A stretch of DNA of 62,958 nucleotides, filler included, from Octopus bimaculoides (Eukaryota), in assembly GCF_001194135.2 (NCBI RefSeq). It is 9 parts of 9 records of this genome, joined end to end, with 100 filler letters (N's around TTAATTAATTAA, not from the genome) between each part and the next. Parts side by side here need not be neighbours in the genome. Positions count along the whole stretch, not along the records: positions 13,259 to 20,946 come from NC_068992.1; 8 more parts are not named here. The stretch is one strand, 5' to 3'. The notes beneath the pieces are model-generated. The model did no database searches. It worked only from the letters and a program-made list of their open reading frames with translations, and had not been told where the DNA came from. This document shows, piece by piece, positions 11,575 through 20,946 of the stretch (position 1 is the first letter of the stretch; the number at the start of each line of letters is the position of its first letter). A program made the position numbers and the translations under genes.

Positions 11575-11897
11575 CAGCTGTACTCAGTGGTTAGAGCGTC
11601 GGTCTTATAATTGTGAAACTGTGAGTTCGATTCCCGGACCGGGCTGTGTGTTGTGTTCTTGCGCGAAGAACTTTATTTCACGTTCCTCCTGTTCACTTAA
11701 CCGGAGAAATGAGTTGCGACATCTCTGGCGCCAAGCTGCATCAGCCTTTGCCTTTTTCTTGGATAACATTGGTGGTATGGATAGAGAGGGGGCTGGTATG
11801 CATGGGCGACTACTGGGCTTCCATAACCAACTTTGCCCAGATTTGTGCCTCGGAGGGTAACTTTCTAGATGCAATCCTATGGTCATTTATGACCGGA
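11575..11897 (+). mobile_element. tRNA-derived SINE family D (CORE-like central region)
   Basis: A-box AGTGGTTAGAGCG and B-box GAGTTCGATTCCC, followed by GTGTTGTGTTCTTG...TTTATTTCACGTT. CORE similarity is by eye only. Confidence 0.75.
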
Positions 11898-12357
11898 AGC
11901 AGCGGAGAGGAGACGAAATAGTGTGGTGGAGCGAGGCAAAAGTCCTAGTTGTGTCACGTGCGCAAGTGAAGACCAATAAAGAGCTTTCTGTCTAGAAGAG
12001 AAGTAGAAAGAAAAGGAAAGCAGAGGGGGCGCAGAACAGGAAAGGCTGGAACACTAACAGTGTGCCCCCAAGGAGAAGACTGTTGTGGATTATACACTAT
12101 TTGTATAACACCACATTTCGCAGCACCACGTATAGCCAGAGCAGAAGCAAGTGATAATACTATAATACTACTTAATGGACACCATCAGCAGAAATCAGAC
12201 AAACCTGAAAAACCCGGAGAGTTTGCCCTGCTTCACAGTGCCAGCTGGCAACAGGGGATAATAGTACAAATCTAACTTCTTGCGACGATGAAAGAGCACA
12301 TATTTGCAGTTTACTTAATTCAACTATTCAACGCGTGTGTATTTTGCGTGTATTTTG

Positions 12358-12723
12358 TGGAGGCGCAAATGGCCCAGTGGTTAGGGCAACGGACTCGCGG
12401 TTTCGATTTTCAGACCGGACGTTGTGTTTATTGAGCGAAAACACCTAAAGCTCCACGAGGATCCAGCAGGAGGTGGTGGTGAACTCTGCTGTACTCTTTC
12501 ACCACAACCTCCTCTCACTCTTTCTTCCTGTTTCTGTTGTACCTGTATTTCAAAGGGCTAGCCTTGTCACACTCTGTATCACGCTGAATCTCCCCGAGAA
12601 CTACGCTAAGGGTATACGTGTCTGTGGAGTGCTCAGCCACTTGCACGTTAATTTCACGAGCAGGCTGTTCCGTTGATCTGATCAAGTGAAATACTTGTCG
12701 TCGTAACCGACGGAGTGCCACCA
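12358..12723 (+). mobile_element. tRNA-derived SINE family B
   Basis: Head TGGAGGCGCAAATGGCCCAGTGGTTAGGGC and tail GTCGT..CCGACGGAGTGCCA, shared with 26789-27070 and 15600-15742. Confidence 0.85.
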
Positions 12724-13102: not shown

Positions 13103-13529
13103 GTGGTGGTGGTGGTGGTGGTGGTGGTGGTGTGTGTGTGTGTGTGTGTGTGTGTGTGNNNNNNNNNNNNNNNNNNNNNNNNNNNNNNNNNNNNNNNNNN
13201 NNTTAATTAATTAANNNNNNNNNNNNNNNNNNNNNNNNNNNNNNNNNNNNNNNNNNNNTCTCTGTTTCTGTCTGTCAGCCTCTCTCTCTGTGTATATATT
13301 TATCTATATTATACTAAAACTCAAAGTTTGTCTGTTTTCCTGCCCTTTGATAATAATGATTACAAATAATATAGTTAATAAAATTTACAAATATTTTAGT
13401 CATTTCTCTTTTTAAGAAGAAACAATCAAGTTGAAAATGTCGATTTGCGGCACTTCAGTGTGTCGTCGGAACCACTGCCGTCCATCTTTTTCTTACTTTC
13501 TTTTTTCTTACTATTTTATTTTTATTCGG

Positions 13530-15590
13530 AAGTCCTGCGGCGATGGGAAGGTGGTGAAGCATGCAGACCTGACGGATTAGAAGATGTTCAGGCTGCTGCT
13601 GATGCAAATGACAGCCACAAGCTTCACCATCTTATGAAGCAAGTTTTGGGCCTAAGAGCTCTGCATCAGCTCCTTTGTTTTCTAAGGAGACTTCAACTCT
13701 ATTTACTAAATCAAGAGAAATCACAGGTCGCTGGATTGAACACTTCTCTGAACTCCTAAACCATGAGTCAGTAGTGGATGAAACAGTAATTGATACTATG
13801 CAACAAAGACCTATCATTGGCTCCTTAAATTCCACGCCCTCAATAGATGAGGTGTTGACAGCAATAAGTAAATTGAATCTTGGTAGGGCACCTGGAAAGA
13901 ATGGAATTTGTGCTGAGGTCTTGCGATTTGGTGGTGATTACATCATAAGTCTCTTCATGAACTTATTAGTGCAGTCTGGAGGGATGGTGTAATGCCTAAG
14001 AACTGGAAGGATGCAATTATTCTTCCTCTCTATAAAAGAAAAAAAGCCAGAACAATGTGTGGTAACTACAGAGGCATTGCTCTACTATCAGCTGCTGGCA
14101 AGGTTCTGGCAACTATTCTTCTTACCCGTCTGAATGGGTGTCTCGTAAATGATGTCCTATCTGAATCTCAATGTGGCTTCCGATCTGGTAGAGGGACAAT
14201 GGATATGATCTTCACAGCAAGACAGATGCAGGAGGAGTGCTATGAGTAGAATATGGATCTTGTCCAGGTATTCGTTGATTTAACGAAGGCTTTTGATACT
14301 GTGAATAGGGCCTTGCTATGGAAAATACTTGGCAAACTTGGATGCCTGGATCACTTTGTATCTATGATTAAATCATTTCATGATGGGATGGAGGCTTGGG
14401 TCAATGCTGTGGTGTCACTGTGAGACCCATTCCTGTAGAGAATGGTGTCAAGCATCCTTGACCCAACTCTCTTTTCTTTGTACTTTACTGCTGCTTTTAC
14501 TCATGCTTTGCTAAGGTTAGCTCTCTGGGAATATATGTCAGATATCGATCTTCTGGCTGCTTCTTTAATCTGCGCCGATTTGCTGCCAATTCAAAAGTTT
14601 TCCAGTCTCTTATTCGTGACTTCCTTTATGCAGATGACTGTGACTTAGTCACTCATACAGTGCAAATTCTTATGAATCGTATTTCTGCTTCTTGCAAGGC
14701 ATTTAGACTCAGCATTAGCCTGGACAAGACTGTTGTAATGTTCCAGCCTGCATCGGCAAATCCATATGTGGAACCAGCTATCTTGGTTGAAGGAACAATT
14801 CTGAAAGTGGTAGACAAGTTTGTCTACCTGGGCAGCACACTCAGCCGTTCTTGCTCCCTGGATGATGAAATATCTTTCAGGCTGCAGAGATCAACTGATT
14901 CCTTCCGGTCTCTTCAGTCTCGTGTCTGGTCCCAGCATGGCATCACAGATCAAACAAAAACTGCTGTGTACTGTGCATGTGTACTGACATCGCTCTTTTA
15001 CTCATGTGAGACACGGACCCATTACAAACGTCATGTCAGGATCCTTGAACGCTTTCATCAGAGATATCTCAGACACATTATGAATGTTGGCCGGACCTTA
15101 AAAACTCCAGACACACAGGTCCTGAGGACAGCTGATATCTTGAGTATTGAGGCGATGGTGCACACGCACCGGTTACATTGAACTGGACACCTTATTAGAA
15201 TGAAGGATAACAGGATCCCTAAGCTGATGCTATATGGGGAACTTGTAAATGGAAAGAAACATCGGCAGAAACCAAGGCTGCAATTTAAGGACTGTATCAA
15301 GTCCTCATTAAAGGCCTGTGATATGCAGGAGAGTGACTGGGAGAGCAATACCTGTCATCGCTACAGATGGAGGAAGCAGGTTAAGGAAGGGGTCGACACT
15401 TTTGAGAGAGCACGTATGAAGAATTTAAGCATGAAGAACTTAAGGGTGCTGCTCGAAAGCATGCTGTTCGAAAGCGCACTACTGGTGTAGTGAATGAGGA
15501 AATTCTTGTTTGCAATGTTTGCAGTCGTATATGCTTGTCAAGAGCAAGGCTCATTAGCCATGAACGGAGCCGCAAATGCAAAATATAAGT
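13530..15590 (+). mobile_element. 5'-truncated, degenerate RTE-clade LINE (RT plus C-terminal C2H2-like motif)
   Basis: WKDAIILPLYK..CGNYRGIALLSAAGKVL, SQCGFRSGRGTMDMIF, FVDLTKAFDTV, VDKFVYLGS and CNVCSRICLS...LISH. Stops and frameshifts are present. Confidence 0.92.
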
Positions 15591-15599
15591 TAGTCCTAG

Positions 15600-15742
15600 A
15601 GCGCTGAATATCCCCGAGAACTACGTTAAGAGTACACGTGTGTGTGGAGTGATCAGCCATTTTCACGTTAATTTCACGTGCAGGCTGTTCCGTTGATCGG
15701 ATCAACTGGAACCCTCGTCGTAAGCGATGGAGTGCCAACAAC
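15600..15742 (+). mobile_element. Segment homologous to the 3' half of SINE family B, directly after the RTE ORF
   Basis: CGCTGAAT.TCCCCGAGAACTACG...GGAGTGCCAACAAC matches 12581-12723. Confidence 0.85.
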
Positions 15743-16462
15743 ATGTACGTTTGAAAGCCAGTATTTATGCGTGTCGTATCTGGGTAAAACTTTATGAGGA
15801 AATCCTTTACTGAACAAAAATACTGACAAATAGATCATCAATGATTTTAATCGTCTGATGATATACAATATATACAATTAAATGGATTAAATGGATTGAC
15901 TATGAACAGATTGGATAATCTATTCATTGTCACACACACACACACACACACACTCAGAGTCACGTGATTACGCGCACGCACAGTAGTCATAAATATTACC
16001 ATGTGTAGGAGAACATTAATTAGTAAAATTAAAGAGTTACAACTAATGACTCCTTTCCGGTACCTACTCCACCGATGTTGAAATCAATAATATTAATCCA
16101 ATGTGTACATTTATTCAGAACCGATTTTTATCAACAGGGAGTCAAATTCAAAGTAATAGCGTTGAGGAGAGGAAAGAAGTTGTTTCAAAAAGAATGACGC
16201 TAAACAAACGCGATATTGCCAACTGTCTGACATTTTCATGAAGGATGGATATTAAAATGAACATAATAGATAAGAATCCCGCTTTTTGAAGATATATAAA
16301 ATCAGTAAGCTTTTTGGTTTTCATTTCTCGTGTGCTTATTTGCATAATTCGGTATATATACAATTATATATTTCTTCATGTTATATTTTTCTGTATTCCT
16401 CTGTCTCGCTCATCCAATCAAATATTGTTGACGATTTAAATTTCATTAATTATGGTGGAATT

Positions 16463-19400
16463 ATGAAGCTACAGACATTGCTAAGCACATATGTTTTAAC
16501 CGTCCTTCTACAACATTCAGACGAGGAACAGCGAAGTTCAAATCCCCATCGGTATCTAACTCTGCAACTTGTGGCAGATATACATAATTACAACAACTGG
16601 AAATTTGGTCGTTTCTACTCAGTTGAAACCATGATTGATTTATCCACAAACAAAGTTTTTTTTTTCGAAGATCCAGTAACTCTGCGCGTTTACTTCAACG
16701 ATTTAGTTATTGGTTATCCCATCCAATTTTTGCAATTTGTCAACAATCAACCGTACGAAATGATTTATAACCATACCTGTGATAATAGTAATAAAAAGGC
16801 CGAAGCTTTCTGCCAACATTCATATATAGGTGGCAAATCGTACAAAACAAAAGGATACTGTTGTCCTGAAAGTCTGCAGATGCATTGCATTCTATATGAT
16901 CCTTTATGGTATTCTGTTAATACTCTCGGCAACCCTATAATTATTCAAAGTCTTATAGTAGAGGTTTTTAAAAAAGAAAGGCACGCTGAGAAAAAGGAGC
17001 AAAGTGTCGCAAAAAGCAATCGTTTTCTTGTCAACGGCAAAACTATCGAGAAGAGAGACGACAACCTTTATTTCACGGCCCGCGTTCTTCACCAGACCAA
17101 CTCTAGTTGTAGACAGATAATTTGTTCAAATTTAAATTATTTATTGATACCCGTTGCAAACTCGGCACTAAATAGAAGTCCACAGGCAAAACAGAACATA
17201 AAAGGTGTTAATGAGTACTTGCTTATTAAGAAAAAATATTTTGATTTAAAAGGAATATCTTGTGGAGCAACAGGAATTACTGCCGGTGCCGTTTTGAAAA
17301 AGATCGACCGTTGTACAAAATCCTTTGTCAAAACTTGTTTCAAGAATCAACCATTGAGTTTCTGGCTTGAAGATAATTTGAAAAAATTGAACAATGATGT
17401 GGAGTCAGACAGATCAAAATATTTCCTATCGCATTTTGCCAAGCTAATGGCTCCTTATACTGGAAGAATTCCCGGTTGGGTATCAAATAAATCGTTGTTA
17501 TTTGTAGAGAATAAAAGGCATTCAATTCGTGCACAGCTAGATATTATAATAAATCTTAACAAAGACGTTCTTCCTTCTGCAATTCCATTATTAAGTGAAG
17601 GATCCATTGGAACCTTGTACAGCCACCCATTGACAGATAAAGGCAGCCGATATGAGATTGGTATAAATGTAATTAACATAGGACTGATTACAGGAAACTT
17701 TAAAGTATTATTAAGCTGTGAACCTGATAGACAGTTCAAGACTTATACATTGACCCCATTTCAAGGAGAAACTGTGATATTTTTTCACAAAATTGGTATT
17801 GCTGAACGAAGCAGTGGGAACACTGTTCCTGGAAAAACTGCCAAATTACTGTTTCCAGTGCAGTGTGAAATAGAATTATGGAATGAAAATCAGAAAACAG
17901 TTAAGTCAAAATACCTTATTATACGAAAAAACAAGCTCTGTATATGTTTAGTTGGTTGTAAATGTAGTTGTGATCCACCATACAAATGTGAAGTGAAAAA
18001 AGCTAAAATGATTCATTCTCCGGTCACGGCTATTTTCCGAGACGAAACATTAATTGCTTTAGGTATAGTTTTACTTTTTCTTATGATACTTAACATGTTA
18101 AAACTCATTTTTGGATTTTGTTTTCCGATATCCATTGGCGAAGCAGGGCTATGTGTTTTTATAAAAAGCAACTATCAGTGTAAATATTTCGATAAAGATC
18201 TTCAATATAAAACTGTAAAATATAACAAAGACGGTTACCCTGTGCACCCCAAAACTAGGCAAAGAGTGCGTGCTCTGTCACAAAAGCAAATGGGGGTTAT
18301 GAATTTCTTTTTTTTCTTTTATTTGCCATTTATTGGCATTCATTGGCTTTTAGTACGAAAATGTATAAATAAAAAGAAATCAGATATAATGTGGAATAAA
18401 TTAGAAACGTCTATCCAACTGATTCACGATGGTGACGAAGAGCGTAGTTTGCACGAATCTTTACGAAAAACAACATGTCATTATTCATCATCAGATCACT
18501 CCGAATTGCCAGATCATATCGAAGAAAAACGGAGTGCTATACTAAATGAATATGGGAAAAGGGTATGCAGAACAAAACGTTGGGAAGATTCGATATGCAA
18601 ACCGTTGAAAAAGTCACAGAGACAATCTTCAGAAGAATGTCGACAAAAGACTAAATTTAAAAGCATGCTTGCTAATATCATGAAAACTGACAAGGATTCT
18701 ACGTCATCAGAAAGTCTAGAAAGTCAGAAAGGTAAGAGGGATAGATTATCAACATTTCCATTGACTAAATCGTCAAAACGACAGACGTATAGTACTTCTA
18801 TAGGACACGAGACTAGTTCATCATCGTTTGAGCCTCCATGTCAACCATCCAAAAGAAGTGTCACAAGTGATGCTATGAAAAGTACACTTCAGTTTCCACT
18901 ACCAGAATTAATTCTTGATGTTCCTCTAGAGAAGCCACCAGGTGAAACTGACAAAGAAAGGATTGAGCGTGGTAATGTAAGCGCAACAACTCTCTCTGAA
19001 ATTGAAGTAAGTGAAAATGTGAGTGATGCTTCCTGTAGAGAAGTTGGAAAAAAGCCGTCTAAGACCAGCATCTTTAAAAAGAAGTCAAAATCAGCAAAAC
19101 GGACCACATCACGTGTTTCCTGGACAGAGGCAGATCGTGAAGAACAAGTGTGCAGCAGCAAAGAAGATGGTCGGCGTTTTGGATTCAAAGGGAAATCACG
19201 GAGTAAAGAATCCAGGGATATAGGAGAAGTGCCATTTGGATCGTTAGGTGAACAGAGAGGTAGAGCATCACCAGCTAAGTTAGGTAGCCTTTCTGATGTT
19301 GAACATCGGAGAGAAGTTTCAGCTCAAGAAGTTGAGTGCATGCCTCTAGTAAAATCTATGAGTGCGTTTCCCGTACAGGAGAGAGAGCATGTTTCATTAA

Positions 19401-20946
19401 GACAACCATCGACTGCAATGCCATTAACTACGGAAAGGACGTATACTTCAAGCAGAATGCATCCAAGTGAAATCACAAGAAGTGACATACTACAAAGGTC
19501 AGTCATTTCACCGGATCAGAAAGAACAGAAAAGAGTCTCAGATGCTATATTATACCCCCCAACAACTCCCACATACACCAAAGAACCATCGGACGTTGCA
19601 TTTGATCAGCAGTTCGTTCGACGATCTACCGATGGCTTTCAGCATTTCTCCAAAGAACAACAACGAAGTCCGACATCTATGGTTATTTCTTTAGAACAAC
19701 CGCCAATTGAACCAATTATCGAGCAGAAGCAAGCATCTTCGTTAGAACAAGAGCCGAGTCAATTGTCTAGAAAGGAAATGCAGCATGTCTCCTTAGAACA
19801 GTTGCGAAGTAGACAGCGTAGTGAAGATATGCAAGTTGTCTCCTTAGAAGAAGAGATGAGTCCACTATCTACAGAAGAGATGCAAGAGATCTTCATGGGG
19901 CAGCCGAGTGGAGTTTCTGAGGAAGCGATACGGCGCGTTACTGGAGTCCAACAGTCGACTTCAAAAATTTCCACGGCTTCAGCACCTTGTTTCGAGATTG
20001 AAAAATTGCCACTACGTCAACAACATGAAGTGCTACCCACACAAGAACGAATGTACAAATCGATGGTAGAGCCAGTGACTCAAATTCCTGTAAAAGACAC
20101 TCTGTACAAATTGCACTCAGATGGGAAATTAGCTCGAAAAGACAAAGTAGCCTCTTCAGGAGTAGCGCAACAGAGAAAATCATCGAAAAAGGGACAATAT
20201 CGAGTATCCTTTTTTGATACACCTATATTAGCACCGAAAAAACAAGATATTACTTTTGTACCACCAGATGATATAACAAAACCGACTTCATCAATGTACG
20301 ATGAAAAACCAATAAGGATGAGAAAGAGATCTTCTTCAGTTGATCATCGAAGTCAGATATCCAGAAAAGACACAGTGGAGAGTTCTTTTGAACAACGGCC
20401 TAGTGAAACTTACAGAGAGGATGTCAAAGAAATTCTACCTACATATGATTCAAGAGGTGTATTTGAAGAACTGCATATTCCATCACCTGAAAAGCAGGCT
20501 TCAATGCTGTATGATACAGTGAGAGAGACGCCGCATGATATATCGGAAATGTATAGCCTGTTAACAGACCAAGTAAGTCAACCATCTGTTGAAAGAGAGA
20601 GTACTATCAGATCGATATCAGATGAGCGAAGTCAGATATCTGAAACAATGGGTATTCCGAGTTCAATAACGGATCGTCGAAGTGAAATATCTGAAAGAGA
20701 AAGTATTCCTAGTACAATGATGGATCAACGAAGTCGATTATCCGAAAGAGAGAGTACTATCAGATCGATATCAGATGGGCGAAGTCAGATATCTGAAACA
20801 ATGGGTACTCCGAGTTCAATAACGGACCGTCGAAGTGAAATATCTGAAAGAGAGAGTATTCCTAGTACAATGATGGATCAACGAAGTCGATTATCCGAAA
20901 GAGAGAGTACTATCAGATCGATATCAGATGCGCGAAGTCAGATATC
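16463..20946 (+). CDS. HAP2: Divergent HAP2/GCS1 (fusexin)-like membrane protein with a very long repetitive C-terminal tail; 3'-incomplete at an assembly gap
   Basis: The open frame runs from 16286 into the gap; M at 16463 begins a signal-peptide-like MKLQTLLSTYVLTVLL. HAP2-like motifs appear in the correct order: DPVTLRVY...GYPIQFLQFVNNQPYE (16670-16759), C..FCQ...GYCC (to 16864), HCILYDPLWYSVNTLG (16883), YLLIP, YLLIKKKYFDLKGISCGATG..C...TCFKNQ (to 17350), an Ig-like domain III region, CICLVGCKCSC...C (17939-17989), and hydrophobic segments at ~18050-18128 and ~18293-18355. The track's stop at 20998 lies in an artificial gap linker. Confidence 0.88.
19673..19927 (+). repeat. Coding tandem repeat, 5 diverged 51-bp (17-aa) units
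   Basis: TSMVISLEQPPIEPIIE / QKQASSLEQEPSQLSRK / EMQHVSLEQLRSRQRSE / DMQVVSLEEEMSPLSTE / EMQEIFMGQPSGVSEEA. Confidence 0.85.
20591..20946 (+). repeat. Coding 153-bp higher-order repeat (3 x 51 bp), at least 2.3 copies, running into the gap
   Basis: Units start at 20591, 20744 and 20897. Units 1 and 2 differ at 4 of 153 nt. Confidence 0.95.

Follow-up and report, generated by a model that had tools for sequence, protein, structure and literature searches.

The window analysed here, a 62,958-nucleotide stretch of Octopus bimaculoides DNA made of nine parts joined end to end, carries on its usable piece (positions 13259-20946) a HAP2/GCS1 gene whose product has lost the cd fusion loop. By its sequence and predicted fold the protein is a homologue of this class II fusogen family, but the link between strands c and d is six residues long, where canonical HAP2s have 25-116. 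We consider it best explained, with a probability of roughly 60%, as a gamete-membrane fusogen whose loop was lost, whose remaining machinery has been maintained, and which would engage its target through protein contacts. The protein database holds no entry corresponding to the window's own gene, which therefore appears unannotated. Its main features are listed below; P0002 is a more distant homologue that shares the short link.

16463..20946, plus strand: intron-free coding sequence (CDS) of the HAP2/GCS1 homologue, a single open reading frame (ORF) that matches PF10699 and is collinear with the multi-exon bivalve HAP2s.
16463..16519, plus strand: probable signal peptide MKLQTLLSTYVLTVLLQHS, an N-terminal hydrophobic stretch that aligns with the signal peptides of P0002 and canonical HAP2s.
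16628..17743, plus strand: HAP2-GCS1 domain match, amino acids (aa) 56-427, covering domains II and I (Pfam; AlphaFold2 model).
16757..16759, plus strand: Glu99 of QPYE on strand b, the canonical partner of the missing salt-bridge arginine.
16772..16852, plus strand: bc connection, aa 104-130, with the conserved C106-C117 pair (alignment and cysteine audit).
16853..16864, plus strand: strand c, GYCC (G131 Y132 C133 C134), from the sequence and the model strand at aa 130-134.
16865..16882, plus strand: residual cd connection PESLQM (P135-M140), in place of a fusion-loop segment of 25-116 aa.
16883..16930, plus strand: strand d and the conserved HC-ILYDPLWYSVNTL motif, with H141 and C142 at 16883-16888 (PDB and bivalve alignments).
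17261..17338, plus strand: ij hairpin region C267...C292 (CGATGITAGAVLKKIDRCTKSFVKTC), from alignment, with a predicted local distance difference test score (pLDDT) of 92-96.
18047..18118, plus strand: transmembrane segment, about aa 529-552 (hydropathy scan and alignment to the canonical HAP2 transmembrane segment).
18119..18355, plus strand: juxtamembrane module (FPISIGEAGLC...YNKDGYPVHP...), ending in a second hydrophobic segment at aa 612-631 and conserved in the O. vulgaris paralogue, P0002 and Pecten HAP2.

Read codon by codon, GGA TAC TGT TGT (16853-16864) is followed by CCT GAA AGT CTG CAG ATG (16865-16882) and CAT TGC (16883-16888). An earlier note, made from the sequence alone, had read 16859-16888 as CC-PESLQM-HC within an intact frame, and both statements hold: the ORF opens with the first ATG at 16463 and is still open where the piece stops at 20946, giving at least 1494 aa, with a complete 5' end and a 3' end cut by the piece edge. 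The alignments also agree with the note that the cd loop, both loop cysteines and the conserved arginine are gone and that Glu99 is kept. In MAFFT alignments the spacing from CC to HC is 6 residues in the octopus protein as against 25-116 in at least 30 canonical HAP2s, all of which, bivalve molluscs included, carry CCxC...R-G-G-Q-D-C...SAHC. The third cysteine of CCxC and the loop cysteine are absent from the octopus protein (alignment and cysteine audit), and no arginine lies between C134 and C142, with strand-b Glu99 present.

Pairwise comparison places the gap at the same point. When phmmer aligns the protein with Chlamydomonas HAP2, query residues 78-137 pair with chain residues 84-147 and query residues 139-159 with chain residues 186-206; because the chain numbering jumps from 147 to 186, about 38 residues have no counterpart in the octopus protein. 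The Cyanidioschyzon chain 7s0k shows the same gap, and most canonical HAP2 alignments from a HMMER scan of 1.84 billion proteins resume at query residue 139/140, that is, at HC. In the AlphaFold2 model, strand c (aa 130-134) and strand d (aa 139-144) are joined by a four-residue turn, P135-L138, with pLDDT of about 91, so the cd connection is, as modelled, reduced to a tight c-d beta-hairpin turn. Among the relatives, the O. vulgaris paralogue has an arginine in the position of His141, and the Glu99 equivalent of P0002 is an asparagine.

The HAP2 domain II tip is a known indel hotspot, with three hotspots of which one lies in the bc connection; flowering plants lack variable region 2, and many animals and protozoa have a shortened region 3 (PMC6089408). 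All HAP2s described in Fedry 2018 keep part of the cd connection and the Arg-Glu bridge, the salt bridge between the strand b glutamate and the cd arginine is described as invariant, and in Arabidopsis HAP2 either deletion of the alphaF helix or R163A abolishes fusion and fertilisation (PMC6089408). Judged by their alignments, the octopus-type proteins exceed the range of tip variation in that study. Trypanosoma cruzi (5OW4) and flowering-plant HAP2s, for example, keep part of the cd connection, alpha0/alphaF or small loops, and the Arg-Glu bridge, whereas the octopus protein is without both variable regions, the intervening element and the arginine.

The assignment to HAP2, also made in the earlier note, stands on several independent comparisons. 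PF10699 (HAP2-GCS1) is the only significant Pfam family, matched over aa 56-427 at 71.3 bits and E = 8.3e-20 (cut-off 27.4). In a phmmer search of PDB chain sequences, all matches with E < 1 are HAP2 chains, from Cyanidioschyzon (7S0K), Chlamydomonas (6E18, 5MF1 and 6DBS) and Trypanosoma (5OW4); the sole match outside HAP2 is peroxiredoxin-1 at E = 1.4. The AlphaFold2 monomer model, built from a 47-sequence alignment, has a pLDDT of 78 and a predicted template modelling score (pTM) of 0.62; an earlier model from a 9-sequence alignment reached pLDDT 51 and was too poor to use. Foldseek finds for this predicted model a three-domain class II fusion fold nearest to HAP2 structures: the top eight matches are HAP2 chains at E of about 1e-21 (7s0k, 6dbs, 5mf1, 5ow3 and 6e18), followed by archaeal Fsx1 (1e-11), hantavirus Gc (1e-10) and Caenorhabditis elegans EFF-1 (1e-8).

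A word-indexed protein search returned only P0001, P0002 and P0077, and the exhaustive HMMER scan was needed; it gave 83 matches, of which the 30 best-ranked of those looked up were named. The closest canonical sequences are those of Solemya velum, a spider, nemerteans and Pecten. Similarity to Pecten HAP2 (compared as isoform P0085) continues through the transmembrane segment, the juxtamembrane motif and the second hydrophobic segment that follows. Because the profile, structure-model, transmembrane and post-transmembrane matches agree, the octopus protein can be regarded as homologous along its whole length to lophotrochozoan HAP2.

The canonical HAP2s used for detailed comparison were those of Solemya velum (KAL5009314), Pecten maximus (XP_033735138), Chlamydomonas (5MF1/6E18), Arabidopsis (5OW3) and Cyanidioschyzon (7S0K). 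Like them, the octopus protein keeps the Pfam domain, the predicted class II fold, a transmembrane segment, the motifs N-N-x-P-Y-E, G-[FY]-C-C and H-C-x-x-x-D-P-x-W-Y, and the stem knot C-x-C-x3-C-x-C-x-C. The ten core cysteine columns that are invariant in 12 canonical sequences are all cysteine in the octopus protein (C106, C117, C133, C134, C142, C267, C284, C292, C419 and C468), and the stem knot is present. Sequence, hydropathy and alignment give a type I topology of signal peptide, ectodomain, cysteine-rich stem, transmembrane segment and cytoplasmic tail. Pecten HAP2 and the octopus protein further have in common the juxtamembrane I-G-x-x-G-L-C / Y-N-x-x-G-x-P-V-H-P module, together with the second hydrophobic segment. 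It departs from the canonical proteins in the cd link of 6 rather than 25-116 residues, with the third cysteine of CCxC and the arginine and cysteine of R-G-G-Q-D-C absent; in the lack of an N-terminal cysteine pair; in the replacement of the ij tyrosine and phenylalanine residues; in an intron-free CDS as against at least 14 exons; and in a very long, repeat-rich tail.

The deletion recurs in relatives. As it is defined by alignment and not by a motif count, independent recurrence is the relevant control. A paralogue in O. vulgaris (locus L001; GCA_951406725.2, OX597825.1), 53% identical in protein sequence, reads GYCC-PESVQI-RC; its genomic ORF (9113..11686 in L001, at about 71.67 Mb) is continuous from MKLQTLL... 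and encodes 798 aa, and its signal peptide is almost the same as MKLQTLLSTYVLTVLLQHS. P0002, a complete 1163-aa ORF at 35% identity, reads GFCC-PHVLEA-HC and was assembled identically from several independent runs (L002-L004). The three sequences thus share a six-residue link of the form P-x-x-[LV]-x-x, and the ORFs are open in all of them, over at least 1494, 798 and 1163 codons. Assembly collapse, which the earlier note had named as something that would refute its reading, is ruled out: the six-residue link is seen again in two diverged homologues whose assemblies and reads are independent, namely the O. vulgaris paralogue and the P0002 contigs.

Two observations bear on how these relatives are recorded. 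The O. vulgaris protein, the only close relative in the database, is deposited as a 561-aa 'hypothetical protein' (P0001) whose gene model begins at an internal methionine and leaves out some 237 residues at the N-terminus, among them the signal peptide and the entire domain II tip; the loop loss went unnoticed because this model lacks the tip. The P0002 contigs are Logan contigs of ERR14857104, ERR12370320 and ERR12370321, agree exactly along 4.2 kb, and finish in an A-rich tract, an ATTAAA lying some 25 nt from the end. Should they be transcripts, as is possible, they would show expression of a loop-less HAP2.

The cysteine audit points in the same direction. Cysteines have been lost only as complete pairs, namely the cd-loop pair and an N-terminal pair (aa 20-35 region) that is found in 11 of 12 canonical HAP2s and is absent from the loop-less clade. 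A new pair specific to the clade, C216/C221, lies at 17108-17125 (SSCRQIIC; NTCKSC in P0002). Since losses and gains come in pairs, the pattern is that of a folded, disulfide-bonded protein under selection. Together these comparisons indicate that the loop loss is old and maintained, neither an error nor a decaying pseudogene, and that loop, disulfide and Arg clamp were lost before the three lineages or paralogues diverged.

Substitution rates between the two octopus copies are consistent with such maintenance. By the Nei-Gojobori method, the ratio of nonsynonymous to synonymous substitution rates (dN/dS) is 0.62 over the ectodomain (bootstrap 95% confidence interval 0.48-0.80), 0.38 over the transmembrane and juxtamembrane part, and 0.28 over the c-d hairpin region (aa 125-160), the most conserved ectodomain stretch between the paralogues. 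The protein is fast-evolving yet constrained by purifying selection, and the remodelled tip is among its best-kept stretches. Octopus has the gene in at least two diverged copies.

The earlier note had held that a normal hydrophobic loop elsewhere at the domain II tip would undo its reading; neither the bc nor the ij connection holds a long hydrophobic substitute in the alignments or the AlphaFold2 model. Compared with bivalve HAP2, the bc connection (aa 104-130) shows no enlargement. It is mostly polar (NHTCDNSNKKAEAFCQHSYIGGKSYKTK) and strongly divergent between the octopus paralogues, and in the model it forms a short helix whose pLDDT drops to 62 in the second half. The ij hairpin has the canonical length and is likewise not enlarged relative to bivalves, and the aromatics of the canonical ij motif G-V-S-Y-x-A-F are replaced, giving GITAGAV and GISIGSV in octopus and GVTEEAF in P0002. 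As judged from sequence and model secondary structure, neither bc nor ij supplies a substitute hydrophobic element for the lost loop. The three loop-less proteins also share a one-residue insertion in the ij region, within C-T-K-S-F-V-K-T-C.

We therefore propose the following mechanism, in keeping with the probability given above. The HAP2 refolding machinery (domains I-III, cysteine-knot stem, transmembrane segment and juxtamembrane module) is intact and would act at gamete membranes. The octopus protein would have lost the ability to insert cd fusion loops as an anchor in the opposing membrane, retaining at most a small hydrophobic patch composed of the cd turn (L138/M140) and bc loop residues F116, Y121 and I122. 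Target engagement would instead pass through HAP2 on the other gamete, in an EFF-1-like bilateral action, or through a partner protein there; engagement by protein contacts is probable because the lipid-inserting element is absent. The gamete-membrane role is suggested because reproductive proteins typically evolve fast and are duplicated, and because no other cephalopod HAP2 was seen among the 83 HMMER matches or the 30 named.

Several points weigh against this proposal. The putative gamete role has no other grounds than membership of the family and the pattern of fast evolution and duplication. A canonical, loop-bearing HAP2 may lie elsewhere in cephalopod genomes; none appeared among the 83 HMMER matches, of which 30 were named as above, and no cephalopod genome was searched directly. 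The ectodomain dN/dS of 0.62 is high and compatible with relaxed constraint after a loss of fusogenic activity. The structural statement concerns a monomer AlphaFold2 model in which the bc loop has low confidence. Finally, absence of introns is the sole ground for a retrogene origin, and no poly(A) tract or target-site-duplication signature was found downstream of the O. vulgaris paralogue, the 3' end of the gene in the window being cut.

The bilateral version draws on the nematode fusogens. EFF-1 acts bilaterally by trans-trimerisation. Like EFF-1 and AFF-1 of the FF family (4OJC), the octopus protein has a predicted class II fold (Foldseek E of about 1e-8), and to judge by sequence and predicted secondary structure it may likewise be without a long hydrophobic tip loop. 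Unlike them, it belongs by Pfam to HAP2-GCS1 only, with no detectable sequence relationship to EFF-1/AFF-1, and its structural similarity to EFF-1 (template modelling score of about 0.25) is far weaker than that to HAP2. EFF-1 is, moreover, a somatic fusogen, and bilateral action in octopus is an analogy only. The broader proposition, that cephalopods fuse gametes in the EFF-1 manner by trans-engagement, with neither loop nor clamp, and that ticks may do so independently, is one that we put forward tentatively and regard as rather doubtful.

Ticks provide the nearest parallel. The hapless 2-like protein of Ornithodoros turicata (XP_064484785, P0037) has a 10-residue link, CC-NCEPGNNCTV-HC, and that of Rhipicephalus appendiculatus (KAL1487266, P0039) reads CC-NCDGGQNCTV-HC. 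Like the octopus protein, both are without the conserved arginine and keep the strand b glutamate; unlike it, they keep the loop cysteine pair and CCxC, and the shortening is independent, in the arthropod lineage. In a further HAP2-like gene of Ornithodoros (P0032) the link is 26 residues long. By these alignments the loop-less octopus form is not unique in kind, since ticks independently carry a short cd link. The literature searched held no report of a cephalopod or mollusc HAP2, nor of short-link forms. The earlier note's description of an 'undescribed system' is thus too strong: the loop-less form belongs, as a derived member, to an established family of fusogens whose tip is a known indel hotspot and whose tick members have short links, and it is the EFF-1-like or partner-dependent mechanism that is inferred.

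Alternatively, the protein could be an ordinary unilateral fusogen, in which a minimal patch, with the cd turn and both the bc and ij loops contributing, inserts in the egg membrane, resembling the three small loops of T. cruzi HAP2 or the compact cd loop of flaviviruses. HAP2 tips are highly plastic, and T. cruzi manages with three small loops and no amphipathic helix (PMC6089408); a small hydrophobic residue is kept in the turn (PESL, PESV, PHVL), within the hairpin that, at dN/dS 0.28, is the most constrained stretch of the ectodomain. However, the turn offers one or two aliphatics beside an acidic glutamate and zero aromatics, the bc loop is mostly polar and strongly diverged between paralogues, the ij aromatics are replaced in octopus, and the octopus protein lacks the Arg clamp by which every solved HAP2 organises its tip. 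On these grounds we think such an insertion unlikely.

A somewhat less likely alternative is a neofunctionalised or non-fusogenic HAP2 that serves in adhesion, recognition or regulation, with a canonical HAP2 coexisting or another protein performing fusion. The joint loss of the cd loop, the arginine, two disulfides and the ij aromatics would fit it, as would the loss of the partner glutamate from P0002, the high dN/dS of 0.62, the duplication of the gene, and the intron-free copies, which are typical of retrogenes and often take new roles. Against it, the refolding apparatus and the cytoplasmic module shared with bivalves are conserved, which mere adhesion would not need, and no canonical cephalopod HAP2 occurs among the 83 HMMER matches or the 30 named. 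The earlier note had also suggested a role in adhesion or as a dominant negative, which, like its bilateral reading, is a hypothesis. Its view of the gene as a paralogue of a normal HAP2 finds no support, as that same scan, to which no direct search of a cephalopod genome was added, produced no loop-bearing cephalopod sequence. It is very improbable that the feature is artefactual or the DNA dead, whether by assembly collapse, as a processed pseudogene of a mis-spliced mRNA or as an envelope-like gene of a retroelement: the intron-free CDS does adjoin reverse transcriptase (RT) remnants of a long interspersed nuclear element (LINE) at 13445-15490, and the deletion sits where canonical genes have flanking introns (PMC6089408), but the six-residue link recurs across three sequences (53% and 35% identity) that come from different assemblies and runs, the very long ORFs are uninterrupted in DNA with a GC content of 35-38%, every cysteine loss takes a whole pair, dN/dS falls significantly short of 1, a single bivalve exon holds GFCC, the loop and HCLRxDxVW so that skipping it would remove the retained flanks, homology to the paralogue begins at 15982 and leaves the RT outside the duplicated unit, and similarity to bivalve HAP2 spans the whole protein.

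The proposed loss of target insertion in a maintained fusogen matters for what is held to be essential in this family. Experiments in plants, algae, ciliates and Plasmodium have shown that gamete fusion needs the cd fusion loops and the Arg-Glu clamp, which are also the target of transmission-blocking antibodies. With the rest of the fusogen kept under selection and these essential parts deleted, the octopus-type proteins would amount to a natural experiment on how class II fusogens engage a target membrane. They also document HAP2 in cephalopods, where it is fast-evolving, duplicated and intron-free, a pattern typical of reproductive proteins. If the EFF-1-like reading were true, the shift from unilateral, virus-like insertion to bilateral zippering would have been repeated within the fusexin superfamily, and the 'essential' cd loop would be dispensable in animals.

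The gene structure bears on how the loop was lost. The Solemya HAP2 gene extends over 45 kb and has at least 9 exons in the part that was mapped, its first 419 residues; the Pecten gene covers 14 kb and has at least 14 coding exons. The two genes have introns at matching positions, and introns flank the GFCC...DxVW exon. Conserved introns between HAP2 strands b, c and d have been described (PMC6089408). None of the bivalve introns is present in the octopus CDS, which therefore probably descends from a retrocopy. Exon skipping was considered as the origin of the deletion and fails: GFCC, the whole loop and HCLRxDxVW lie on one exon (Solemya aa 153-202, Pecten aa 149-203), and since that exon holds the loop together with flanks that octopus retains, skipping it would also have removed GYCC and HCILYDPLW. 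The loss may instead have been an internal in-frame deletion, or have used cryptic splice sites before retrocopying.

Upstream of the gene, fragments of a LINE-type RT (i.e., from an element without long terminal repeats) lie on the plus strand at 13445-15490, frameshifted and with RVT_1 matches in two ORF pieces. Homology to the O. vulgaris paralogue starts downstream of them, at 15982. Because they are frameshifted and lie outside the block shared with the paralogue, these remnants are not part of the HAP2 gene, and an envelope gene tied to the upstream RT was rejected on the same ground that the remnants fall outside the shared block.

The start of the shared block is unusually well conserved:

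16042..16541, plus strand: 5' block comprising the upstream region, the probable 5' untranslated region (5'UTR) and the signal peptide, 92-99% identical to the O. vulgaris paralogue.

About 420 bp upstream of the ATG and the signal-peptide codons are 92-99% identical between the copies (16042-16541 versus about 8872-9370 of L001); identity then drops abruptly, and the rest of the gene is 60-80% identical. The synonymous rate (dS) is 0.12 in the signal peptide and 0.54 in the ectodomain. This contrast points to gene conversion, or to a promoter, 5'UTR and leader that the copies share and that are strongly constrained. The high identity of the block also points to O. vulgaris, or a very close relative of it, as the source of the DNA. 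A TATA-like 'gatatataaaa' lies within the block at about 16293.

On the cytoplasmic side, the module after the transmembrane segment is common to octopus, P0002 and Pecten HAP2 (L006 exons 11633-12428; Pecten exons aa 570-674), with the consensus FP.xIG.xGLC, then Y-[ND]-x-x-G-[YI]-P-[VI]-[HD]-P, then hydrophobic LNxxFFFYLPxxxxHW. Its hydrophobic end may be re-entrant or serve as another membrane segment. The tail beyond it is repetitive:

20591..20946, plus strand: in-frame tandem repeats of 153 bp (51 aa) in the Ser/Glu/Arg-rich cytoplasmic tail, running off the piece (Tandem Repeats Finder).

There are 2.3 copies at 97% match, of the unit ERESTIRSISD.RSQISETMG.PSSITDRRSEISERESIPSTMMDQRSRLS. 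The tail of P0002 has unrelated short repeats of the TTGKQKE type, and that of the O. vulgaris paralogue is far shorter; the cytoplasmic tails of octopus-type HAP2s thus appear, on this comparison, to evolve by repeat turnover. Finally, a 113-bp piece between the RT remnants and the shared block (15623-15735) recurs at 88% identity at 16721-16836 of L001.

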